This document shows, one piece after another, positions 15,178-32,030 of a DNA stretch of 64,000 nt. Numbering within the stretch: position 1 is the first letter of the stretch; every line of letters starts with the position of its first letter. Source of the stretch: Lytechinus pictus (lineage: Eukaryota). The notes under the pieces are model-generated. The model did no database searches. It saw only the letters and a list, made by a program, of their open reading frames with translations, and was not told the origin of the DNA. The translations under genes were made by a program, and so were the position numbers. Where the stretch lies: NCBI RefSeq assembly GCF_037042905.1, contig NC_087247.1:19282001-19346000 (forward strand). The letters run 5' to 3'.

Positions 15178-15495
15178 NNNNNNNNNNNNNNNNNNNNNNN
15201 NNNNNNNNNNNNNNNNNNNNNNNNNNNNNNNNNNNNNNNNNNNNNNNNNNNNNNNNNNNNNNNNNNNNNNNNNNNNNNNNNNNNNNNNNNNNNNNNNNNN
15301 NNNNNNNNNNNNNNNNNNNNNNNNNNNNNNNNNNNNNNNNNNNNNNNNNNNNNNNNNNNNNNNNNNNNNNNNNNNNNNNNNNNNNNNNNNNNNNNNNNNN
15401 NNNNNNNNNNNNNNNNNNNNNNNNNNNNNNNNNNNNNNNNNNNNNNNNNNNNNNNNNNNNNNNNNNNNNNNNNNNNNNNNNNNNNNNNNNNNNNN
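15178..15495. other. Assembly gap (N run)
   Basis: Run of N bases. Confidence 0.99.
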
Positions 15496-18915: not shown

Positions 18916-20219
18916 ATACATATGGTCCCGGGATATATTAAGCCTAGGAGCTTCAATTTTCAAACAGATTCGAAGCTCCTGAGGCTGAGTCCTGGACCTG
19001 GTACAAAAAGTACTCGTCATCGGATGAGAAAGTTAACAATTTTGGCATTTGTTTCTTTCAATGAATTAACATTAATTTTTCACTCAGCTAGCTAGCCAAG
19101 CAAGGGCACAGGCATCATGGCTATGCTGCCATATGCAGCACTTTCAATCATTGTGACTTTGCATGGAGGGGGGGGGGGGTGGTGTCATTATCTAGGACCA
19201 GAAAAAAGCCTGGTGTTTTGCTGTCCATATTCCATAAGTTACAAGCGACTGGTGACTCTTGCAGTATAGTAATAAGGATCACCAGTCGTGCATAAAGTCA
19301 CTTGTTACTTATGAACAGCTTTATGAAACACCTATTACCCAGTCCTATACAGTGGACCCCCCCCCCCCCCGACATCTGGAAACAAACACAAGTCACCAGG
19401 AAGGTTCTCTCTATTTAAGAAGACCAGTTCTATGTATTCTAGCACTCTTTACTTACTATAAAACCAGGAGGCTCAAATAGAGTCGGTTCAAAAGCGTACC
19501 CTATGCAGAACAAGCTACAAATCATTCTGACAGGCTCTCAAAGTATATGATCTATCCTCTGAAGGAAAAAAGAGAATGGCTTTGCCTAATTAGCTTTCCT
19601 TTAACAGTCCCCTTATTATTTTTGTGACTGGTTGCCCCAAAGCCATGCTGAGACACAGTATTAAAGAGGCTACATGAACTCGAGTGTAGAACAGAATGCT
19701 ACAAAAAGAGTGCTTTACCCTACCTGGTAAGACTTCTAAAGCAACAATGATGAGATATAATTACAATAACACAGATATTGTACCATGCATTAAGTGTTCA
19801 TCAAAAACTGACTATGACTTTTATTTAGAAAGCAACAAGGATTCCAATATTGATGCAGACTTTATTGAATCAAGTGCTACCCAATTTGATAATGAGATTA
19901 CTGAACCAACCATATGATCTATTTTGTACCACCAAATTTGATTGATCACAAAGGTATCTTACCAGTCATCTTGATCTTCATAACTTTTTTAACTTACATG
20001 TTCAATCATAATTTATCAAATAATTTTCTTCTTGATTTGCCAATCAATATAATTATTATAATTCAAAACACACATTTTATCAATACCCTGCATAGTCATG
20101 TTTTCATTGAATATTTTATCAATTTTTACCTCCACTTGATGTTTTATTATTCTTTTATTTCCCAACAATACAGAATGTAATTTCAATATCATTTTTCTAG
20201 TATTTGTAATCTCGTACTT

Positions 20220-20490
20220 CCTCTTTTTCTCTCACCCCCTCTCCCAATTGTCCATCTTTCTCATCCTTTCCTCCTTCCTTTTCATTCTCTTATCTTCTTT
20301 TTAATCATATTCATTATCCTCTTCCTATTCTTCCCCTTCCCCTTCATTTTCTTCTCCCTCTTAATCTTCTCCTTTCTTCTTCTCTTTTTCATCAGCTTAT
20401 TTTGCTTCTTCTTCTTCATCATCAGCTTCTTCTTCTTTTCCTCCTGATCCTCATTCTTCTCCCCCTCCTTCTTATCCTCCTCCCAACATT
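20220..20490. repeat. Polypyrimidine low-complexity (CTT/CT) tract
   Basis: Degenerate CTT/CTC repeats; the K/E-rich ORF over it is spurious. Confidence 0.8.
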
Positions 20491-20560
20491 TGATTAATTC
20501 AATTTGAGACTTCATATCATACATATTTCAGTTGGTATTCTCATAATTGTGTAGCAATGA

Positions 20561-20700
20561 CCTAGGACCCATAACAGAAAGGTTAGCAATAATTTAAAAG
20601 AATGAATCTGATTGGTTCCTAGTCAGTCTGCTGAGCAAAGTGCGCATGCAACAATTATCTTGATAGGCCATTTCATTAGCCTTTGTGTTACGGGGCCCAG
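20561..20700. mobile_element. Short MITE abutting the Academ-like element
   Basis: Imperfect TIRs CTAGGACCCATAACAGAAAGG / CCTTTGTGTTACGGGGCCCAG. Confidence 0.5.
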
Positions 20701-20707
20701 GTAACCC

Positions 20708-20880
20708 TAGCCTCTTGTCGAGGCCCTGTCGGCTGCTTTCCGAGCGAACATGGCGAAGCAAGGGATATAGCGAAGCAGAGCGCAGCGAGACAGGCTCGCG
20801 CCAGGCCTAATTTGCTTCGCGGATTAGGAAATCCCTCGCTTCGCTCGGGAAGCAGCCACCAGGGCCTCGACAAGAGGCTA
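20708..20880. mobile_element. AcademH-like MITE with a 9-bp TSD
   Basis: Perfect TIR TAGCCTCTTGTCGAGGCCCTG / CAGGGCCTCGACAAGAGGCTA. AGGTAACCC is duplicated at 20699-20707 and 20881-20889. TAG..CTA ends with a 9-bp TSD fit AcademH. Confidence 0.75.
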
Positions 20881-22167
20881 AGGTAACCCGAGACAACAAT
20901 TGTTTAGAGAATATATCATATGTGCATTAAAACAATTAGCCAAGTAAAATATGTGACGTGTACTTTTTCGTCGTGTAAAATACCTATGTCATAATGTGTC
21001 TACACTTGTTGATATTATTTTATGAATTGTATATCGACCGTGTACATGTATTCCAGTATTTGTGACTGTGATGCATGATCTGATAAAATAGCCTTATTAG
21101 TAATTTGGTAAATAAAAAAAATGTAAAGTGTGCTTGTCAAAAAGGAAGTTATTCAGTTGATACAAGAGTTTCATTGAGGCCATTTGCAAAGATTATGTGC
21201 ACATGTCATGCTTAAGTGAATCTTGAAATTCAAACCTTGTTTTCTCCTTTATTATTTTATGAAACTCTCACTGAATTAATTTCTTCTGCATTGAATCAAG
21301 TACTTGTGTGGGTTACTGTTGATCAATTTTGAAAAGCATAGCTTGTGTGTGTTTTTTTTTTCAAGCTAAATGAATGTCTCAAAAAATTCATTATGGGGGA
21401 CTTATTGTGGTTTTATACCACTAAAACCACCTATATGTAGCTGGTACAAACAAAATGTTAAAACGGCTGTTTTCGACTCGCCGTATGGCCGTCGTAAAAC
21501 AAATGTGATCAAGGTATTAGGATGACTGGTCACATTTGACTTTATATTTTCATTGAAATTGTATGAGATGGTTATTGGATATCACATCATATGGAATGAA
21601 TACCAAGTTTCCTTGTCAAGGTCAACATTCATTTCTAGTCAAGGCCAGAGGTCGTTTAGGTCATCAAACTTTTAATTAAAAAAAACAATTATATATGATG
21701 CCTAAAAAATGTGTTTGCTGTAACAAAGGGGGGATGAATTTGGTTGGCACATAAGTGTTGTTCCCAAGCTCTTGGGTACATAAATGGCTGTTCTTGTGAT
21801 GAAAGGAGGAATGATCCATCAACATTATCAACATGCTCAATGTTGGTGCATTTACTTGCATTCGCTACTGATAATATCAGAGCACTTGCTCTATAGTTTG
21901 TCATGTTCCTTTATAGACCATTTGTTTTCTTGTTTCTTGCTCAGCTGTTTATTAGACTCTTGTTTTTAATGACATTTTGTCAATTTCGTTAACTATATAT
22001 GCATAAAATGCTACATTAATTGGGCTATACTACAGTTATTGCTCTTGAATATCATTTCCCAAGTTGCATGTGAACTTTTTTTGCATACAAAAGATTTATA
22101 GTTTGCCAAATGTTTGTTTGTTTTCCCTGCAGACTTTTATCGCAGAGGATATCAGTATTAAATCGTC

Positions 22168-24822
22168 ATGACCAGTTGTGGCGATCTTTGTAGTCATCCA
22201 GGACTAAGTGAATGGATTGAACAGAATCTGAAGAAACGCAGAGGCTGGGTTGAGTTGGATAAACTGTGCAGTGCAATGTCCAGCCTTCCAGACACCCACA
22301 GGGCATGTAGATGTGAAGTCTCAGAAGTATTAAAAAGTTCAACCTTTCAGAAGCATTTTCTTATTCGAGAGAATGTGGTCTTCTTGAAGACAAGCTATGA
22401 AAACGGTCTCAAAAAGTTGAGAAATCTACTTCAGGAGAGGGGCCCTTTATCATTAAAGACACTTCATAAGAATCTGAGACAAATTCTGACAGAGGGTGAA
22501 GAAGTGGCGCTTGGAAGGAATAAGAAAGACCTGAAATCTACCGTATGCAGTGAGTCTGCAATTTTCTCAACAGAGCCGTTTACTGGTTTGATAGTGTTAT
22601 GTGGTGTGCATCCAATTTTAGATCAATCCTGTTGTCATTCAGGGGTGATAGGATGGATTGAGCAGTGCCTTAAAAAGCATTCTGGTTGGTCTACCATTGA
22701 TGATATGAACAAGTATAAATCTCAGCTTGGTGCTGGTAAGCAGTCCTGTAAGTGTGCCTTGGCGTCCTTGATATTGCTTCCTAATATTCGCAAGCATTTC
22801 CATGTTCAAGGAAATAATGTCTTTGAAAAGTCGTACTACCGGTCTGGTCTCAAGAAAATGACAGATGTTCTTGTGAGGAATGGTCCAACAAAGATCAATG
22901 TATTGCTGAATATGCTGAAAGATGCCGATAATCTTTCTGAGACAGAACTGAGGGCCCTTGGTGAGAATGAGAAGGCTCTTTTGGACACCATTTGTAAAGA
23001 ACAACAATTGTTTCAGCCATTATCTCATTCTGGTCGAGTTCACTTGAAATCTGGTTGCCGAAAGCCATGCAGACATCAAGCTCTAATTGTATGGATTAAT
23101 AGCTACTTGAATAAATGCGATGAGTGGGTTAGTATTGAAAAGCTCTGTGAAGCCACTTCTAAAATCCCTAATTCTGAGAATCTATGTAGATGTGAGCTCT
23201 CTGAAGTACTCCGTGATGAAAAGCTGTCTTTTCACGTTCAGGGTAATGATATTTGCTCACGGTCATTGTTTTCATCAAATTATAAAAGTGGCATAAAGAA
23301 GATAGAAGATTTCTTGAAGAAGAAAGGCCCACAACCAGTAGGTATATTACTGAACATGCTTAAACAATGCAAGGTAATGACAGCAAATGAAGAGAGGGTA
23401 CTTGGCAGGAACAAAAAGGAACTAGCTTATACTATCACCAGAGAGCCATCAGTTTTCAAGTTTGTATCTCCTCCGGGTGTTGTAATGTTGAGGACTAGCC
23501 GTCACGAAGACAAGAACCAAGTGACCAAAGTTATTGAGTACCTTGAAAAATATCTGAGAACTTGCCAGAAATGTTATGTGAAAACTTTGTTGAAACAAGT
23601 TGTCAGACATGAGTCTTTGAGCACAGGATGTATTTCCGGGGTACGTTCACTCAGGAGATTGCTAGCAGCACACCCCGAACGTTTCCTCATACACGGTGAT
23701 GGAAGTGTGTCTCTCACAAAGAGACGCCGAAAGGCCCTCAGTGACCCTCCAAAGTCACATGGAATTAAAAGGCATGGAGCCCCAGAAGTCTCTGTTGAAC
23801 AGTCTGTGGATGAACCAGTACATACACAAGTATTTTGTTCATCTACTGAAGATATGAACGCCTCAAAGTCATTGAATGCCGGTGACAAGAACATCAATCT
23901 TGACTCTACTTCAATCTGCAAACAAACAGAAATTTCTCATGAAGCTGGTAAAAGTGAATCCTCAAGAGATTTCAATAGAGGCTTGTGTTTCATTGAAAAG
24001 CTCCTTGAAAATCATGGACCTATGATGTTGCAAGACATTCATACTTCCATTGTAGCTTCTTCAAAACTTGACAAGCCAGCAAGAAGAATCCTTGGGAGAA
24101 CACCAGAGGAGTTGCTCTCAATACTCCTGTTGCAGAAAGACACTTTTCATGTCATACCCCCAAGTGACCTTGTTGTGTTGTGCAAGACAGCACAAATGAA
24201 AGTAAATCCGTGGGTGACTGGTCTGAAGAAAGTAGAGGAGTATTTAAAAAGGAGTCGTCAATTAGATGAGCTGGTGGATTTCATTAGAAGTAACCTTACA
24301 GTACAAGAGAGGCGAGTATTTGGGGAATCAAAGAAGAAAGTAAATCGTACTCTTGCCCTCTGCAAAGATAGATTTCTGAATAGCAGTGGCGTTATTATTC
24401 TTAGATCTGCTCAAGTACCATTATCTAGAGTTGAAGGAGGTGTGACAAAGAGAAAGATCAAGGGAAAAGATAATGCTGAATGCACAGAAGAAAACACAAG
24501 CAAAAAGCGAAAAACTGATCCTAAATTTCAGACACCAAGAGGCTCTATGGTAGTTCATGTTGTTGAGACAGCTGAAGAATGGGCACAGGCCTGTTCTTCT
24601 CTCTTTGAAAGTAAATCATCAGTGGTTGGCATAGAATGTGACAGTAAGTGGTTTGTATTGAAGCAGTGGGATGGTAAAGTGATCGCAGCAAAGATCCAGC
24701 GGTGTGTAGCCCAAGCATCATCCAAATGTGAGCAGCCTGTGGGACAGAGCAGGACACCAAGCAAAACAGGAGACATTTTTGAGCAGTTATCACTTCTTCT
24801 CACAAGTTCAACTATTCTCAAG
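22168..24822 (+). CDS. Egalitarian/EXD1-like protein, coding exon 1: tandem winged-helix (LOTUS/Egl-type) modules plus start of the 3'-5' exonuclease-like domain
   Basis: 885 open codons with an in-frame TAA just upstream of the ATG. Acceptor ctgcag| at 22132 and donor AAG|gtcagc at 24823. Repeated LG-N-K-L...F...G-V-L modules, LRRLLAAHPERFLIHGDGSVSL, and VVGIECDS...LLLTSSTILK typical of the Egl/EXD1 DnaQ fold. Confidence 0.85.
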
Positions 24823-24841
24823 GTCAGCAAGTCTTATGTTT

Positions 24842-25050
24842 GGTTCCATGACAATTGCTCCGGCGACAATTGCTCCGCTGTGAATTCCACACACTAAAAG
24901 AATCGTCAACTTCAACCCAGGATTTAACACTATACCCTATCCTTAACCTAACCCTAAACCTAAAATAAAACCCCTATTGCAACCCTAACTCTATATCTTA
25001 GACGAAATAAATCCCGGAGCAATAGTTGCAGGAGCAAATGTCGTGTCACC
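24842..25050. mobile_element. MuDR-like MITE carrying degenerate CCCTAA repeats, inserted ~19 bp into the intron
   Basis: TIRs GGTTCCATGACAATTGCTCC / GGAGCAAATGTCGTGTCACC. CTTATGTT flanks both sides. Confidence 0.7.
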
Positions 25051-26063
25051 CTTATGTTGTGTTATTGTGTACACGATCAAATTTTTATTAGGAAGCAATA
25101 AACAAGCTTACACTACATCAGAATAAATTTATTTTCTGTTGCAGAGATTTGTGTCAGGATAATGTTTCCCATTATTTGTGATTATTTATTATCTGACAAG
25201 GCTTTTCAAAGTTAATCAGTTGTTACCAAATTTCATTTGAAATTTGAAAATCTGGATAGAATAATAATCAAATAAAAAAAAACTTATAAGGCGGGGGGGG
25301 GGGGGGGGACTTTCTGAAAGTGGGTAAAATAAAAATTCTCCTCTGAGATTTGCACCATTTATTTCAACTTAAAAAAAAAAGACTCAGACTATCCCATACC
25401 AGTCATTATTAATAAAAAGGATGGCAGAGGGTGTTTTTATAGGGCAGCAATTTCCCTTCCAGCTTGTAAAGAAAACGTTTCTGTGGGTGGTTGTAGATAT
25501 TTATTAAGTGATGTTCTGTAGGTACAGTACATGTCCTTGTGATCACTATTTGCTGTTTGAGAAATACTCTTTAATGTTTCCACAGTAGCATACGAGATTC
25601 ATGGGTACATGTATACCGGCATGTATACTGTGAAGAGTATAATAAAGCAACTTGATTCTGCTACTCGAATGGTGCGGAAACCAATGATATCCTGTTATGT
25701 TCTCACTTGGCAGTGATCCAGGAGGGTTACATGTGCATGTACAATAATGACTCAAGTTAGGTGGTGAAATAACTGGAAATGAGGGCAGCTGAAAATGATA
25801 ATGTCAATGGGAGTTGAATATCTAAAAAGTGAATGATAAAAGAGGCACAGAATATGGCTAGGTCCACCTAGTCATGCTCATGAATGACACCCCCCCCCCC
25901 CCCAAAAAAAAAAAATGTCACCTACACTTTTTAGTATCTTTTTTTTTAGTTGAAAATTCTTATTCTCTTTAAAAGAATCTCGTTATGTAACAAAAAAAAC
26001 AAGTCGATTTTAATCTCTTTTGGATTAGAAATTACTTTTTGTTATATCCTTGTCATTTTAAAG

Positions 26064-26144
26064 GTGGTGTATGATGTCCAAAAGATCTCTTCTATGCTGC
26101 GTGATAAGATGCCTCTCAACATCGAAAACGTATTTGATATCAAG
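26064..26144 (+). CDS. Egalitarian/EXD1-like protein, coding exon 2 (exonuclease-like domain)
   Basis: VVYDVQKISSMLRDKMPLNIENVFDIK corresponds to the family segment K-VIHDCR-D...NVFDTQ. Boundaries aag| and |gtgaga, phase 0/0. Confidence 0.85.
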
Positions 26145-26970
26145 GTGAGAAATCAGTGTTCGTAGATCATTCATAATATGAGTACATACAAGGGTGACCC
26201 TCCCCCTTCCCTCTCCCACCACCTCTTCATCAATAAAAATACCCTGATGCTGCTTACCAATTTAACTTCTTTTATGCAGTTTATGTTTTCGATTATACTG
26301 ATTTAACAAGAGCTGATCACTAACTTACAATAAAACATTTTTGCTGCTGATACTATCAAAGTGGCAATCCCTGTTAATTCATTTGAACTTATTTTGAATG
26401 GGGGATTGACTTTGTGGGAACTTACAGTACAATTTGTCTTGTTTGCCCATGATGTGTAAAAAACCAAACCAACCATGAATTTGCCAAAATGAATTTAGTC
26501 ATTTTAATTTAGATGAAAAAATTGCATCCTAGTAAGGCTTTAATAAAGAGGTTACTGATCAAAGTTAGTCTACAATAAGTCAAATTTACTTGGTTTAAAG
26601 TAGAAGAATAACATGTAAAGGGAGATATTGAAATGAATTTGAATCTCCTATCTTTATTAATCTTCAACAAGACCACTCTTTACTTCATAAACAAATATTT
26701 TTTGCAATGTTTAGGGATAGTGTAATGTTAGCCGCAGGACAATGTTTCTAATCTCTGAATATGTACAGGTTAGTCTAAAATCAAGATTGTAATCATTGAA
26801 TATATCTCTTGACTCTCAGTTCGTGACCGGATTCTGATTTGAGATTTGAATCCTTTTAGGCATTGGTCTGAGATTTCTCTCCAATCAATCCTGTGATTAT
26901 GTATGTTTTTTTTTTAAATCTGTATTTGACACACTGAATGGCTGTAATACATCATCTGGTTTATTTACAG

Positions 26971-27191
26971 GTGGCTAATCAACTCATCAGTCGCACCAGC
27001 CTGTCACATTGGATACCCCATCCTTTATCATTCACAGAACTGTGTGAGAGGTATAGCATTATTCCGTCTGCTGTAGTCCAAGTGGTCTCTCAATCTGTCA
27101 GTGGAGTTGATGATCAGGATGTCGCAAATCTGAAGAACATGGCTGTCCTGACCTGTACCCTTATACCACATTTCTTGCGCAAGATGTACAG
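26971..27191 (+). CDS. Egalitarian/EXD1-like protein, coding exon 3
   Basis: VANQLISR...LSFTELCERY matches the family segment VA...SL--LC--Y. Boundaries tttacag| and AG|gtacat, phase 0/2. Confidence 0.8.
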
Positions 27192-28581
27192 GTACATGTA
27201 TACTCTAAATTAGGAAGTTTTTTACTTACGGGTATGATTTGTTTTTTACTTACGGGTATGAATTTTTGCATGAAATATGAAGATGAGTTGTGCTTTGTAG
27301 TTTGATCTTTCTTTCCTATGTAGGGAGTTTGAATTATAATGGAAAAACACACAGAGCTGCCAACTATTAAGAAATTAAGAAAAAATCACTACTATTTTCA
27401 TGTCAAGTTATGCCATTTCACTTTGACCTTTAATAGTTTTTATGCTTTGAGCATGAATAGGAATGTGCTCGTTTGATACACACATAGTTAAATACATTGC
27501 ACAGTGTCATAATCATTTGAAGGCAGGTGATAATATTCATTTCACGCATGATCATGTCTCATTGTTTTCACCATGCATGTCATACGCGGTGTTTTCTCGA
27601 AATATATTTTTTCAGTTATTTGTAAATATATTTTTCAGCTATTTGTAAATTTACTTTCCCGACCGGGCAATTGGCGTCAAAAAGTTATTTTGTAACGTGG
27701 GTAAATGTTCCTGACAATTACCCTGTAGGGTTGGCATCTGTGCACATTAGGTGCTGTTCTATTTTGTCTTTAAAGAAATTTATATTACTGCGCGTTGCAT
27801 ATGAAATAACTACTTTTATCTCAAAATTATTACTTTTGAGCTTCTGGATTACTACTTTTTTACTTTTATAGGTTGGCAGCTCTGTACACATGTATTTTTT
27901 TCTACCCATTCACCTCACTTTGGTTGATTGCAGTTCAGTGTGGATGAATTTCTCGCTGAATAAAAGTAACACCGGGAGTAGGATTCCAACCCATTATCAT
28001 TGATTGAAAAGAGAGAGTTAGAATCACTGCACCATGATGCTTCCAAAGATATTACTTAATGGAAAAAAATTGATTCAAATATACAAAAATGCTTGGTAGA
28101 TTGACCATTGATACCAATAATAATCAAAGTAATAATGCTGATGAATTGCAAACTTACTGTCATCAATCATCATACTCATCATCATCTTGAGTAGGTATTA
28201 CTTTTATTATCGCCCCTACTATTTGATGGATATATCACCTGTGTCTATGAAAGTTAATTTGAGGTAAATAAAAACCTCTGAACCCTCGAGTGGTAATTAT
28301 CCTTTCTGTTATTGAGGGGCTTCTATCATTCTGTTTCATGAATAAAATATTTCAGATGTTGCAAACCTGCAAATATGCAACAAGAAGGAAACATTTTTGG
28401 TCTTTCAGTCATGATCTGAGTCTAATCTGTACTAAATATTGTTACTCTGGCTGGAAGACACTACATAAGCTGAGCCATATCAGTCATATGTTTGTAATAT
28501 CATATACATGTAGATATTGTCTTTTAGATTATGAAGGATTCATTTTTATGTTATATTACATTTATCGTGATTTTTTTTCAG

Positions 28582-29725
28582 AGATTTGAATGTGGATCTT
28601 CTCACAGAGCACAACTGCATTGTTGAAGAGCTCTGTAATGCATGGAGAAAAGGACCTCAATCAAGACTAAGTTCCAGCAGAGATCTTGATATATCTTCAG
28701 CTCAAGAGCAGGAAATGCCCAGCGTGCAAGCACCTCAGCCTTGCATTACTGATTGCCCTGTACCTGTTGAAGAACCGAGTACTGCTGGAGAATGTGATCC
28801 AGGAAGACAATTTCCATCATCGGCTGAAGAGCCAGGGTCAGGAACTCAACCTCTGGAGCATACTAAAGCAGTCTCGGGCCAGGAGCAGGGAACCCCTTTG
28901 GCTAGTACTCATATCCTGGATCCTCATCCCCTTCTGCAATCTGGAAGCTCTTTTATTCCATGCGATTCTGGTTCACGGTCAGGCATTCATCCTCCAGGGG
29001 ATCCTAAAACATCAGTCCAGGAGCTGGGATTTTCCCCTATCAATGCACAGATTGTCAATTCTCATGCTCTCATTCTGAAAGCTGGAGGATCCTGTACTCC
29101 ATGGGCTTGTGATTCACAGTATAGAAATCTTACCCCCAAGGATTCGAAGGCAACTTCAATTCATGAGCAGGGAGCTTCTGTGGTCAGCAAGCAGGTGGTG
29201 GACCCTTGTGTTCCTGATCCTCCAATATTGCATTCTCAACCATCTTGTGTCCCATGGATGTCTGCTTGGCAGTCAAGAAGAAATCATGCTCCTCAATATA
29301 CTAATGCAACTTCAGTCCAAATGCAGGGGATGCCAACTACCAACAAGCCAATCCTGAAAATTCCAAAGCCTGGCCCTAATCATATTGGAGATGTCTGTCT
29401 AGCTGGTAATGGAGAGGTAGGGATGTCTGTGCTAAACAAGTGCCTTCCTAACCCTCAAAATCTCTCCGCTAATGTACCGTATGCTCCTAAAGAATCTGTT
29501 TTGAGCCATGAAAATCAACTTCTAACAAACTCTAACTCTTCTGCAGGGAGAGTACAAGGAATCACTTCAACAAGCACACAGATTCCTAACCCTCCATTGC
29601 AGGATCCACGTGTTCGTCATGTTGAAGAGCTGTATGAGGCATTGGAGGCGGGTTTGGGTGCAGGCAAATATCTTCCTAAGTATTCCCGTAAGTCTTCCGC
29701 AAAGAAACAGCAGAAACATCTTTGA
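28582..29725 (+). CDS. Egalitarian/EXD1-like protein, terminal exon (post-exonuclease helix and disordered repeat tail)
   Basis: Acceptor ttttcag| with matching phase 2 joins the 379-aa ORF. Joined CDS 2655+81+221+1144 = 4101 nt, giving 1366 aa. Confidence 0.8.
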
Positions 29726-32030
29726 TGAGATGTCTAACCCTTCTTTTCCACATCCTAGATTGTCTTTAGGGGAGAGTTGTCAACATTGTATTTTCTAGGT
29801 AAGAGGATATTTGAAGAAGTGTTGTCTTTTACAACTTATTCCTACATTTTGCTTAAGTATCATTAGATGGGCTATAATAAATTCCTTACCCAAGTACTAA
29901 GGGATATACATTTTTAGAATCAAATAATATATACTGTTTATCACAGTATGGTACCTAACACTATCAAAGGGAGATATCTTGGGCCCATTTAATAAAGGGT
30001 TACAACTATTGCCATTATGGCCACTACCATCGTGGTAAAGGCTTTGCAGCCAATCAAAATCAAGGTTTCTTTCCATGGGAGTTAATGCCAAATTTACAAT
30101 TATAGGCTTAACTATTTTAAACAGGCCTTATGATATCATATTTCAGTATGAAATTATGACTTTCGATTCCTCTACAAAATTGATAATTTATTCCTATTGT
30201 CCTTACTAAAGGATAAATGGAAAAAATATCGTCCTTACTAAATGGCTGAATGAATCCAAATAAGCAGCATAATGATAATTATAGGAACTTTATAAAAAAT
30301 TTAGTGGCTAATTGTTTAAATTGATAATTTTGTAAACCACGATTGGAATAGGTGATGACTGGATTTAATATACATGAATCCATGGTAATCTGAAGCTTTG
30401 CTTTTCTCTATATATGATATATGATATGTTTTTTCTTAAGAATGATCACTGTAATTATCAGAAATTACCAGTAGTGCGTCTGAATGTATCTCTTGCTTCC
30501 AAAATACTTTGTTACCTTATTCAAGGTTTGTAAGATCATTGATCATGATTTAAGGCTTTATGGCATATTAGATTTGGGACTGTATATTACAGTGGTTTAT
30601 TAAAAGTGATGTTAAGACAAGCAAGAAAGTAACTAGAGAGTAATGTTATTTGCTTATGACTTAAAAACATAAATATATCATTATGTTTTATGAAATTAGC
30701 TCATGTCATCTTGACTTGAGATATCTAGAAATCTTTGTATGTTTACATGCTTTTTGAGTACATGTATACCTTGCATTGTTAGTATCATAAAGGAAAAAAG
30801 AGTAATTGCTTTTGGTATAAATTTGTTCAGAATTTGTTATGTTTTTGTTATTTTTTTTAATAGAGACTTCCACATATTCAGATACCAATTGATATGATTT
30901 CAAGACGAGTAATTTGTCATATAAACAATCAACTATCATGATTTTTTTAATGTTTTTTATCAAGACCACTATAAATTCCTTTTTATATGCAATAAATTAA
31001 TATTAACACCCTTATGCTCACCTGTTTTTAATGCATTTTAAGGGTAAGTTAGTTGTTTTGATGAGGTATCAAGCGTAAGTTGATGGCATGGGTTTTTTGT
31101 TTCATATTATCTATTGGACAAGTAGGGTTTGGAGTGATTTTGGGATGTACATGTAAACATCGAAGGAAGAAATTGGGGAAATGAGATAAGAACTAGAGCT
31201 GTAATATGAGTTTGTTGATACAGTTTACAAGTTTAATTATAGTTTCTAACTATTTGAATAAAACCATTAACAGCATTCCATTTAAGAAATTACCAAGTAA
31301 TCAAAATGAAAACATTGTTATCATTATTAATGAAAAATCAGATGGCTTCATATTGTTAAAAAAAAGCTTCTTGAATTTCATGGCTTGCTTCCTAGCTAAA
31401 TGATATGAATCTTAATAATTTCCTTTCTTCATAGGAAATGATATACTGTACATCCCAATTGTGTATATGTCTTCAGAACAATTTCAAAGAGACGATATAT
31501 GGAAATACATGGTGTAGCTCAATTATATTCCTCTCATCAACTTTGCTAAAAGAAATATGTTGTCTCAATTTCTCCTTTCCACAGAAAATTATAGATGCCT
31601 TTTAGGGAACACTTGCCTCTATTGCCCCAAAAAGTTGAGTAAATTGCACGGGGAATACCATGGATGGGCATGTAATCACAGTGCTAAAAGTCTATTTCCA
31701 CTTATTATCATTGATCAAGTTCAATCACTATTCAGAATTTTTCTTTCATGATATCATTATACAGTGGAAAGTTTCATTAATGAAACTTTTGATCTTGCAA
31801 CTTTGCGATTATCAGACTTCTTTTTACCAAGAATCTTGGTTTGATATTTCATAAATTAACCCTTGTACTTAGTAATGTGGATATTTCTTTCCAGGAATAA
31901 GTAATAAAGTATTATGTCAATCTGATAATGCAACTCAATTCATCACCATCCAGTTTGCATTTTCACTTCACTTGCTGCTATGTCTGGCAAGCTTTCAGGT
32001 GTTGAGTTTAGTGTTCATGTTTGAATAGCA

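Follow-up and report, generated by a model that had tools for sequence, protein, structure and literature searches.

Among the adaptors that choose mRNAs for transport by dynein, Egalitarian (Egl) is the one understood best, and it is not known to have a vertebrate counterpart. EXD1 (PDB 5FIQ/5FIS) is an inactive exonuclease-like piRNA factor. Sea urchins lend themselves well to work on localised maternal RNAs. The Egl domains (EDs) of the Drosophila protein recognise minor grooves that lie next to each other in RNA stem-loops; its structure with RNA dates only from 2026, and the cryo-EM structures are 9RVY-9RWB (PMC13186709).

We analysed a gene in a 64,000-nucleotide window (the whole stretch of DNA under analysis) from the sea urchin Lytechinus pictus. 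Our main reading, to which we give a probability of about 60%, is that it encodes an Egalitarian-family protein with nine winged helices, zinc-clamped A modules and an inactive exonuclease domain, likely a multivalent adaptor for structured RNA. Such an adaptor would be its likeliest function, with RNA binding putative and a BicD/dynein link a possibility.

Results

The locus is a real, expressed, single-copy sea-urchin gene. Four coding exons give a spliced CDS of 1,366 aa without an internal stop:

22168..24822, + strand: coding exon 1 (aa 1-885), 2,655 nt, from the ATG to a GT donor
26064..26144, + strand: coding exon 2 (aa 886-912), from splice joints and spliced translation
26971..27191, + strand: coding exon 3 (aa 913-986), from the tblastn map and splice joints
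28582..29725, + strand: coding exon 4, through the stop codon, from the tblastn map and splice joints

An ORF of 909 aa spans 22168-24897, and its stretch beyond 24822 is intronic read-through, the true exon ending there. The AG acceptor near 22133 points to a further, 5'UTR exon upstream. The L. variegatus orthologue maps onto coding exon 1 at 95% identity (tblastn). The joint 24822/26064 is GT..AG in RNA contigs and raw RNA reads, and all three introns (3/3 GT..AG) were seen in RNA-derived contigs from two runs and in stranded raw reads from two more; the read orientation is compatible with + strand RNA, provided that the libraries were stranded in the usual way. RNA run X1 contained 100% of the sampled words from coding exon 1. 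The tblastn map and the RNA-supported joints thus confirm the single 2.7-kb coding exon proposed in the earlier note, which was made from the sequence letters alone; this exon contains the nine winged-helix modules in full and the beginning of the exonuclease-like domain. A transposon or viral origin of this large intronless exon was considered and rejected, the gene being single-copy and spliced, with the same module order across echinoids. Rfam gave no matches at positions 20000-31000. The annotation of the gene in relatives reads 'uncharacterized' only, and a literature search on sea-urchin Egalitarian and the locus names found no study of it.

The protein would run from nine winged helices in the N-terminal 750 residues through a basic linker and an exonuclease-homology domain (ExoHD) to a disordered tail. 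Coding exon 1 is laid out as follows:

22168..22389, + strand: module A1 (aa 1-74) with C8, H10, C47 and C49; winged helix in the AF2 model
22189-22191, 22195-22197, 22306-22308 and 22312-22314, + strand: codons of the A1 tetrad C8, H10, C47 and C49
22390..22608, + strand: module B1 (aa 75-147), ED/LOTUS-like four-helix winged helix (AF2 pLDDT 90-97, VIA-align)
22609..22830, + strand: module A2 (aa 148-221) with C155, H157, C194 and C196, from the repeat alignment
22831..23046, + strand: module B2 (aa 222-293), ED-type, from the repeat alignment and profiles
23047..23277, + strand: module A3 (aa 294-370) with C301, H303, C340 and C342, from the repeat alignment
23278..23502, + strand: module B3 (aa 371-445), ED-type, from the repeat alignment and profiles
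23503..23727, + strand: module M7 (aa 446-520), plain winged helix (AF2 pLDDT 60-89, H-E-H-H-E-E)
23728..23958, + strand: acidic linker (aa 521-597), poorly conserved and predicted disordered (AF2 pLDDT 25-33, pI 5.8)
23959..24192, + strand: module M8 (aa 598-675), ED-type (PF23713, AF2 pLDDT 75-86)
24193..24423, + strand: module M9 (aa 676-752), ED-type by sequence profile, AF2 of low confidence (pLDDT 55-61)
24424..24543, + strand: basic linker (aa 753-792, KRKIK...KKRK), 12 K/R in 40 aa
24544..24822, + strand: first part of the exonuclease-homology domain, with an ExoI-like G-I-E-C-D at aa 821-825 and then a variable insert

Three repeat units of about 147 aa (aa 1-147, 148-293 and 294-445) are mutually 34-35% identical with 32 invariant columns, and unit-against-unit blastp gave E 1.6e-28 to 2.6e-30 (89-94 bits; shuffled controls 11 +/- 5 bits). 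Each unit is an A module (C-x-H...C-x-C) that abuts a B module without a linker, and the three single modules M7-M9 lie downstream. The C-x-H stands at aa 8, 155 and 301 (nt 22189, 22630 and 23068) and the C-x-C at aa 47, 194 and 340, with the pairs CSH/CRC, CCH/CKC and CRH/CRC. The earlier note had placed its three repeat starts at these same positions, and the repeats, A/B pairing, motifs and later single modules that it described are all present in the translation; the position at which it stopped, 24420, corresponds to the close of the ninth module (aa 752). Its count of about nine winged-helix modules also holds: where it had asked whether the repeats model as winged helices, A1, B1, M7 and M8 do so in AF2, with winged-helix topology and structural matches, M9 is assigned by sequence profile only, and A2, A3, B2 and B3 are taken as winged helices because they share 34-35% identity with the modelled unit.

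The AF2 model of A1+B1 has pLDDT 87.3 and pTM 0.78, with the A1 topology H11-23, E27-29, H30-38, H51-54, E64-67 and E70-73 (pLDDT 73-92). The C-x-H lies directly before helix 1 and the C-x-C in an unusually long loop directly before the last helix. We found 12 A modules in 4-5 echinoid species, and C8, H10, C47 and C49 are invariant in all of them (12/12). These residues make up four of the seven invariant positions of the module; at least three Cys/His occur in 15 alignment columns, and the other 11 vary freely. The tetrad is most likely a structural zinc site, putative as it is, which would hold one zinc ion and clamp the N-terminal arm to the long loop.

It is conceivable, and on balance unlikely, that the tetrad has another role, as a ligand or partner surface, as redox-sensitive Cys motifs, or as two features that never meet. 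The confident part of the model has C8 and H10 at its margin (residues 1-7 with pLDDT <50, block 41-50 with a mean of 73), as this alternative would allow. The selective invariance of just these Cys/His columns argues against it, as does the fact that C-x-H and C-x-C supply exactly four classical zinc ligands, and the winged-helix topology would put the N-termini of helix 1 and of the last helix at the same end of the bundle. Disulfides are unlikely since the Egl-family kinship suggests an intracellular protein. Complex prediction of A1 and Zn with B1 as partner (score 0.00, partner pLDDT <50) carries no weight either way, and the structure searches barely sampled module A.

M7 is without the conserved Cys/His tetrad and ends in a basic cluster, TKRRRK. 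Every one of its VIA-align matches is a winged helix, for instance APC2 WHB (Z 9.3, 1.9 Å), and against WH_Egal it reached E 0.08. hhalign detected no sequence link of the A module or M7 to the ED-type modules (probability <=1.6%; A: 0.2%).

Five modules (B1, B2, B3, M8 and M9) share common ancestry with ED1-3 of Egl. The B/M8/M9 profile matches ED1, ED2 and ED3 of Drosophila Egl at E 8.7e-16. VIA-align placed B1 on residues 6-80 (ED1) of Egl 9rvy_D with Z 12.3 and rmsd 1.6 Å over 73 residues, against a generic winged-helix background of Z 10.1 and lower. Foldseek ranks 1-11 in pdb are Egl-BicD cryo-EM chains (E 1.3e-4 to 3.5e-3), its best Swiss-Prot structure match is C. elegans Egal-1 (E 1.7e-5), and the AFDB and Atlas clusters carry the names Egal-1/Egalitarian. 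PF23713 (WH_Egal) reaches 53 bits over the whole protein, and M8 is the only module above the Pfam cut-off by itself (27.2 bits, cut-off 27). By hhalign, M8 (96%) and M9 (97%, E 9e-11) match module B, and M9 reached 64 bits in the own-genome ED profile search. The Egalitarian kinship that had been claimed from the letters is therefore well founded in the WH_Egal score, the profile match and the first place of Egl in Foldseek and VIA-align. In sequence searches Egl was reached by profiles only, and phmmer searches of the PDB with the whole ORF and with the ExoHD gave no matches. The RNA-base-contacting residues of Egl ED1/ED2 (H31, C35) are not conserved in B1-3, as judged by eye.

The basic linker at aa 753-792 keeps its basic character in Strongylocentrotus and P0005 and is a candidate bipartite nuclear-import signal or RNA-binding linker; in the alignment with Strongylocentrotus the first basic cluster, KRRRK, shows no conservation. 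If the basic clusters are import signals, the tandem winged helices could belong to a nuclear DNA- or chromatin-binding factor and read DNA as ZBP1 Z-alpha/Z-beta, KAT6A WH1-WH2 or cullin/MarR-type domains do. The conservation of the bipartite-like linker in three lineages is consistent with this, and the structural neighbours include the ZBP1 tandem Z domains, KAT6A, STN1 and many bacterial DNA-binding winged-helix regulators. We consider a DNA factor improbable, because only the dsRNA-binding EDs of Egl are significant homologues by sequence, the best structural match (Z 12.3) stands above the generic winged helices (10.1 and lower), and the domain partner is an Egl/EXD1-type exonuclease-like domain.

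This partner extends over the remaining exons. Exon 2 carries an ExoII-like motif with I893 in place of the catalytic Asp, an Ile in 3/3 echinoid lineages, so that this Asp is replaced as in EXD1. Exon 3 holds the rest of the domain, with V958 at the ExoIII Tyr position and D962 kept. In exon 4 the last conserved exonuclease-like helices end at about aa 1010 (nt ~28655), followed by a poorly conserved tail of ~350 aa. The ExoHD has its best PDB profile matches in Egl (E 0.017) and in EXD1 (E 0.053, spanning 120 residues), all below significance, Pfam DNA_pol_A_exo1 (PF01612) reached 15 bits, under its cut-off of 23.6, and the Atlas features gave 0.93 to 'Exd1 homolog'. With AF2 pLDDT <40 (model of aa 446-1015), the fold is not readable from the model. 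An Egl/EXD1-type exonuclease-like domain, as had been suggested, agrees with the position and motifs, with Egl and EXD1 as top PDB profile matches, and with the Atlas value. A word-based search with the ExoHD and an own-genome search with its profile returned nothing but orthologues and the protein itself.

The domain departs from an active DEDD signature, with E-x-D at ExoI, Ile893 for the ExoII Asp and Val958 for the ExoIII Tyr, in an alignment that is itself weak. Judged from these residues, it is degenerate and probably inactive. An active 3'-5' exonuclease, for which the winged-helix array would merely target substrates, is very improbable: acidic residues do persist at ExoI (E823 and D825; D-C-D in S. 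purpuratus), D910 and D962, but the ExoII Asp aligns to Ile in each of the three echinoid lineages, Val stands at the ExoIII Tyr position, the fold is interrupted by a variable insert of low complexity, and DNA_pol_A_exo1 stays under its cut-off.

After the ExoIII region only two conserved helices precede ~aa 1010, where conservation ceases, and the model, of low confidence here, shows no evident tetrahelical XAD of the Egl kind. No conserved dynein-light-chain motif was found in the C-terminal tail; one TQ[TVI]-like site (TQI, aa 1318) was rejected because the tails of S. purpuratus and P0005 lack it.

The likeness to EXD1, with a hydrophobic residue for the ExoII Asp in both, would also suit a germ-granule scaffold of the LOTUS/EXD1 kind, whose winged-helix modules recruit Vasa (a DEAD-box helicase) or piRNA factors and serve no motor linkage. 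The LOTUS domains of TDRD5, TDRD7, Tejas and MARF1 match module B and M8 by fold only (Z 7.6-8.5), which is support for this scaffold in kind and clearly under Egl in score, and OST-HTH (PF12872) gave no match at E <=1 for the whole protein or at E <=10 for its pieces. A C-terminal helix is reported by Jeske et al. (2017) to mark the Vasa-binding extended LOTUS domains; each B module ends at the wing and the next module starts at once, so there is no room for such a helix. Pfam detected no match in the protein to an Lsm-like domain as in EXD1. We therefore hold the germ-granule scaffold to be quite improbable and keep to the Egalitarian-family adaptor.

Module A is restricted to echinoids in the data searched. 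A profile search of the 812-Mb own genome found three copies, all in this gene (next match E 0.48), and a search of 1.84 billion proteins returned 12 matches, in which module A is confined to echinoids. The PF23713 search of the own genome gave no matches, not even this gene, and was thus too insensitive, while the profiles built here worked. The number of units appears to rise 1->2->3 within echinoids, with the proviso that the Diadema gene models may be partial. The echinoid restriction of module A and this apparent rise support the lineage-specific expansion proposed earlier. The B3 unit groups with the sole unit, or the last one, of Diadema and P0005 and is probably the oldest. The A modules would be divergent winged helices, and the A+B didomain unit would have been duplicated stepwise within echinoids. 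Tandem WH_Egal arrays also occur elsewhere, in amphioxus, brittle star and ENA sequences, with ~4-7 module B profile stretches each.

Discussion

An expressed deuterostome relative with five Egl-type domains would be a natural experiment on how the number and spacing of domains set RNA selectivity; the protein also carries three urchin-specific, probably zinc-binding modules. If the zinc site is real, it would be a new stabilised variant within the winged-helix/LOTUS fold family; if it is not, the locus is still a clean case of stepwise domain-pair duplication inside one exon.

A more specific proposal is that module A is a zinc-clamped, urchin-born winged helix not described before, which forms with the ED a rigid two-domain reader of structured RNA, and that the protein is a deuterostome counterpart of Egl, the mRNA-localisation adaptor, for localised maternal mRNAs in the egg and embryo. 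The thrice-repeated unit would then let one polypeptide do what the Drosophila Egl dimer does. We regard this proposal as speculative and unlikely.

ArsR/SmtB winged-helix sensors such as CadC have an alpha-3N metal site with ligands on the N-terminal arm and a C-x-C at a helix start; they are bacterial dimeric DNA-binding proteins, and the metal site bridges two subunits. Module A resembles them in its putative N-terminal arm ligands, its C-x-C and the local motif C-x-C-[DE]-[LV]-S. However, the match (Lmo1102, 9T6R) has a non-significant E of 0.11 and the C-x-C helix is probably not equivalent, and this lead was set aside as an analogy only.

MARF1/Limkain-b1, TDRD5/7, Oskar and Tejas share with the urchin protein the helix-extended winged-helix fold, and MARF1 also has many such domains in tandem beside a nuclease domain. 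The LOTUS proteins differ in their low Z, the missing Pfam OST-HTH match and the absence of the Cys/His tetrad, and the nuclease is of the NYN type, whereas that of the urchin protein is DEDD-like. EXD1 has a similar exonuclease-like domain (below significance) with its hydrophobic residue at ExoII, but carries an Lsm-like domain and no winged-helix array.

A second Egl-like gene lies in the same genome, on the same chromosome and 6.8 Mb away, and also has tandem ED-type modules. This gene and its amphioxus counterpart Hypp3196 combine a WH_Egal array with a SpoIIIAA/Ycf45-type ATPase. It carries no A module (its best match to the module A profile has E 0.48), and an exonuclease-like part was undetected in it with the ExoHD profile of the gene described here.

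The closest system is Drosophila Egl, with C. elegans EGAL-1. The ED-type modules are homologous to theirs by sequence and fold, and, as in Egl, they precede a 3'-5' exonuclease-homology domain, a putative one in the urchin protein, with flexible linkers between the folded parts. Egl is without the Cys/His tetrad of the urchin A modules, and the urchin protein has lost the ExoII Asp and shows no clear tetrahelical XAD. Egl has three winged helices and is a fly protein, whereas the urchin protein belongs to a deuterostome and has nine, four of which (A1-3 and M7) are not ED-type by sequence.

Repeats and open reading frame

The repeats lie in one long frame:

22168-24897, + strand: ORF of 909 aa

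In this ORF, C-x-H is found at residues 8, 155, and 301 and C-x-C at residues 47, 194, and 340, the motif-to-motif spacings being 147 and 146 residues. The three units U1-U3 (aa 1-147, 148-293, and 294-445), each made of a module A and a module B, share 34-35% identity and 32 invariant columns in the alignment of three. Pairwise blastp between units gave E 1.6e-28 to 2.6e-30 (89-94 bits), far above the shuffled-unit control (11 +/- 5 bits, maximum 21), so the three repeats are real. The repeat starts proposed in the earlier note agree exactly with the C-x-H positions at nt 22189, 22630, and 23068, and its observation of the repeats is confirmed.

Gene structure and expression

The nearest database protein is the Lytechinus variegatus 'uncharacterized protein LOC121411212' (1,366 aa, 95% identical), followed by two Strongylocentrotus purpuratus entries (63-65% identity), which points to a Lytechinus-like sea urchin as the source of the window. 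LOC121411212 was placed by tblastn in four blocks within the window, and the three GT..AG joints (24822/26064, 26144/26971, and 27191/28582) were seen in RNA-derived contigs of two runs and in stranded raw RNA-seq reads of two other runs. The first mates of the raw reads at the joints are on the minus strand, consistent with + strand RNA, provided that the libraries are of the usual stranded type. All four exons are spanned by one 5,010-nt transcript contig, and RNA run X1 contained every word sampled from 22168-24822 (100%). The spliced CDS of 4,101 nt has canonical splice sites and zero internal stops and encodes 1,366 aa. The single 2.7-kb exon described previously is right for aa 1-885 (exon end 24822); beyond this point the ORF simply reads on into the intron. 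About 35 nt before the ATG lies an AG acceptor, implying that the 5'UTR has a further exon of its own. A search of the 812-Mb assembly showed the gene to be single-copy.

Additional features were detected in the introns and elsewhere in the window:

24840-25030, intron 1: MITE-like element of ~190 bp, imperfect terminal inverted repeats GACAATTGCTCC... / ...GGAGCAAATGTC
27815-27860, intron 3: raised RNA-contig depth (25-71), loose ends on both sides
15178-15495: 318 consecutive Ns, either an assembly gap or masked sequence

The intron 1 element has one copy only in the window. RNA-derived contigs on it reach summed depths from the thousands up to about 20,000, and numerous loose contig ends enter unrelated sequence, suggesting that the element is high-copy and is carried within many different transcripts. 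The intron 3 stretch is probably another dispersed repeat fragment.

Winged-helix modules and Egalitarian homology

The N-terminal 752 residues were split into nine modules, A1, B1, A2, B2, A3, B3, M7, M8, and M9. In profile-profile comparison, B was linked with both M8 (96%, E 1.9e-9) and M9 (97%, E 9e-11); A and M7 were linked to no other module (at most 1.6%). Pfam WH_Egal scored 53 bits on the whole protein; among single modules M8 alone passed the cut-off (27.2 bits), and B3 and M7 gave E about 0.1. The profile of Egl domain (ED)-type modules, built from 26 sequences of this protein and its relatives, matched Drosophila Egalitarian (Egl) in the PDB (E 8.7e-16) and aligned separately to Egl ED1 (15-75), ED2 (123-164), and ED3 (195-250), establishing the homology of B1-B3, M8, and M9 with the Egl domains. 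The urchin protein has the EDs that characterize the Egalitarian family.

The AlphaFold2 model of unit 1 (input alignment of 12 rows of units) has a mean pLDDT of 87.3 and pTM of 0.78. Module A is modelled as H11-23, E27-29, H30-38, a long loop with a short helix, H51-54, E64-67, and E70-73, the predicted topology of a winged helix. Module B is modelled with four helices and then a wing of two strands, the helix-extended form of Egl EDs and LOTUS domains (PMC13186709). In the Foldseek search of the PDB, ranks 1-11 were Egl-BicD cryo-EM chains (E 1.3e-4 to 3.5e-3), the matches covering about 150 columns, i.e., both modules A and B. The best match among Swiss-Prot models was C. elegans EGAL-1 residues 86-255 (E 1.7e-5), with further matches to the tandem winged-helix proteins UFL1, SelB, and ZBP1, and the AFDB cluster and ESM Atlas searches returned Egal-1/Egalitarian clusters. 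The VIA-align superposition of module B and Egl ED1 (residues 6-80) scored Z 12.3 (rmsd 1.6 Å, 73 residues), ahead of cullin WHB (Z 10.1) and of the LOTUS domains (Z 7.6-8.5); the SelB tandem winged-helix pair spans unit 1 residues 11-147 (Z 9.0).

Another model, computed for aa 446-1015 of the L. variegatus orthologue from an alignment of 5 rows, is poor overall (mean pLDDT 45) and unusable outside M7-M9. In this model M7 (pLDDT 60-89) has the order H-E-H-H-E-E, M8 has pLDDT 75-86, and M9 is weak (55-61). Structural matches of M7 were winged helices without exception, e.g., APC2 WHB (Z 9.3, 1.9 Å).

Both the Egalitarian kinship and the about nine winged-helix modules suggested from the sequence hold. 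The kinship is carried by WH_Egal (53 bits), the ED profile (E 8.7e-16), and structure searches ranking Egl first. Support is uneven between the modules: A1, B1, M7, and M8 are modelled, A2, A3, B2, and B3 are assigned by their 34-35% identity with the modelled unit, and M9 by sequence profile alone.

The Cys/His tetrad of module A

Twelve A+B units were compared: the window, L. variegatus, and S. purpuratus contributed three apiece, P0005 (an echinoid transcript, 3.4-kb contig of SRR6173504) two, and Diadema setosum a single one. All 12 share C8, H10, C47, and C49, the other invariant module A residues being W16, I17, and F64, while 11 other columns with at least three Cys or His vary freely. 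In the unit 1 model C-x-H directly precedes helix 1 and C-x-C ends a 12-residue loop directly before the last helix. Going by the topology of a three-helix winged-helix core, both would lie at the same end of the bundle, where one metal ion could tie them together. We consider the tetrad a likely structural zinc site, with a probability of about 0.65 to 0.7.

C-terminal half

The basic linker (aa 753-792) has 12 K/R in 40 residues, a character retained in S. purpuratus and exaggerated in P0005; the earlier basic cluster KRRRK is not conserved. The linker is followed by a conserved region from aa 793 to about 1010, split by a variable low-complexity insert. Pfam DNA_pol_A_exo1 gave 15 bits against the cut-off of 23.6, the three-lineage profile had its best PDB matches in Egl (E 0.017 and 0.036) and EXD1 (E 0.053), and language-model features ranked 'protein Exd1 homolog' first (0.93), with the PF01612 set making up 52/100 matches. 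The ExoII catalytic Asp (Egl H-D-C-R-N-D) aligns, through a weak underlying match, to Ile893, and EXD1 has Leu at this position; the ExoI motif is E-C-D (D-C-D in S. purpuratus) and the ExoIII Tyr position is Val958. The region reads as an inactive exonuclease-homology domain (ExoHD), the underlying matches being weak, and the ExoHD expected of an Egalitarian protein is plausibly, not rigorously, assigned. It is followed by just two conserved helices, so there is no evident counterpart of the Egl exonuclease-adjacent domain (XAD, tetrahelical in Egl). Conservation is poor over the final ~350 residues, even from one urchin genus to another, and the single TQ[TVI]-like site of this tail is not conserved.

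Distribution and history

The whole-unit profile had 12 matches at E <= 1e-3 among 1.84 billion representative proteins, those with module A being echinoid entries only. Module B only was matched in the brittle star Amphiura, amphioxus Hypp3196, and ENA sequences. Each of these has about 4-7 matching stretches, so a tandem array of EDs is in itself nothing unique. In P0008, one of these module B-only proteins, the ED array is followed on the same long ORF by a sequence weakly matching (domain E 0.012) the beginning of the exonuclease-like domain.

In the own genome, the module A profile detected three copies, all in this gene (E 1e-27 to 1e-29), and none elsewhere (next-best match E 0.48). The ED profile detected five copies in this gene and one further locus, at C3:26.18 Mb:

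G000:C3:26149350-26194801 (loci L002-L005, L016): second Egl-like locus, 6.8 Mb beyond the window

The ORF at this locus (869 aa) contains three or four ED-type modules (WH_Egal 37.8 bits), lacks module A, and lies among exons matching the SpoIIIAA/AAA (ATPase) part of Hypp3196. The urchin genome thus has at least two Egl-like genes.

The ML tree of the 12 units grouped U3 with the last P0005 unit and the single Diadema unit (78/83, weak) and U2 with the first P0005 unit (93/91), with U1 confined to Lytechinus and Strongylocentrotus (100/99). These groupings fit a history in which units were added at the N-terminal side by successive duplications, first giving two and then three, although the gene models of Diadema may be incomplete.

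The S. purpuratus entries P0002 and P0003 (LOC756996 and LOC115917990) are nearly identical across aa 1-700, but P0003 is without M9, the basic linker, and the ExoI region, which could reflect an isoform, differing annotation, or duplication of the locus. P0004 (ENA, 591 aa) joins Ribosomal_S21 (aa 14-60) to the M8/M9 part of the orthologue (63% identity) and probably reflects a merged or chimeric gene prediction in another urchin assembly.

Proposed mechanism and comparison with known proteins

In the Drosophila complex, two Egl chains use their ED1 and ED2 to bind neighbouring minor grooves of one bent stem-loop, the ExoHD-XAD closes the pocket, and the putative catalytic residues, about 15 Å from the RNA, are dispensable (PMC13186709). 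By homology with Egl, the five ED-type modules most likely contact structured RNA, and the putatively inactive exonuclease-like domain would probably make backbone contacts and not serve in catalysis. With five EDs per chain, several stem-loops or sites could be engaged without dimerising. The Egl ED1 base-contact residues H31 and C35 are not conserved in B1-B3 (by-eye reading of the alignment), suggesting that the RNA specificity would differ from that of Egl. Each A module abuts an ED without a linker, the A1-B1 orientation being defined in the model (pTM 0.78); the A modules would most likely be zinc-stabilised partners that either fix the ED spacing or provide a second nucleic-acid or protein surface.

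Databases label this protein 'uncharacterized', and no description of the nine-module architecture or of module A was found in the literature searched. The identity and architecture given in the earlier note, Egl-type modules and about nine winged helices, were largely right; its zinc clasp, nuclear import, and RNA-transport or small-RNA pathway keep the standing of candidate readings. The protein is not a member of OST-HTH/LOTUS by profile, and it is like EXD1 only in the nuclease-like domain.
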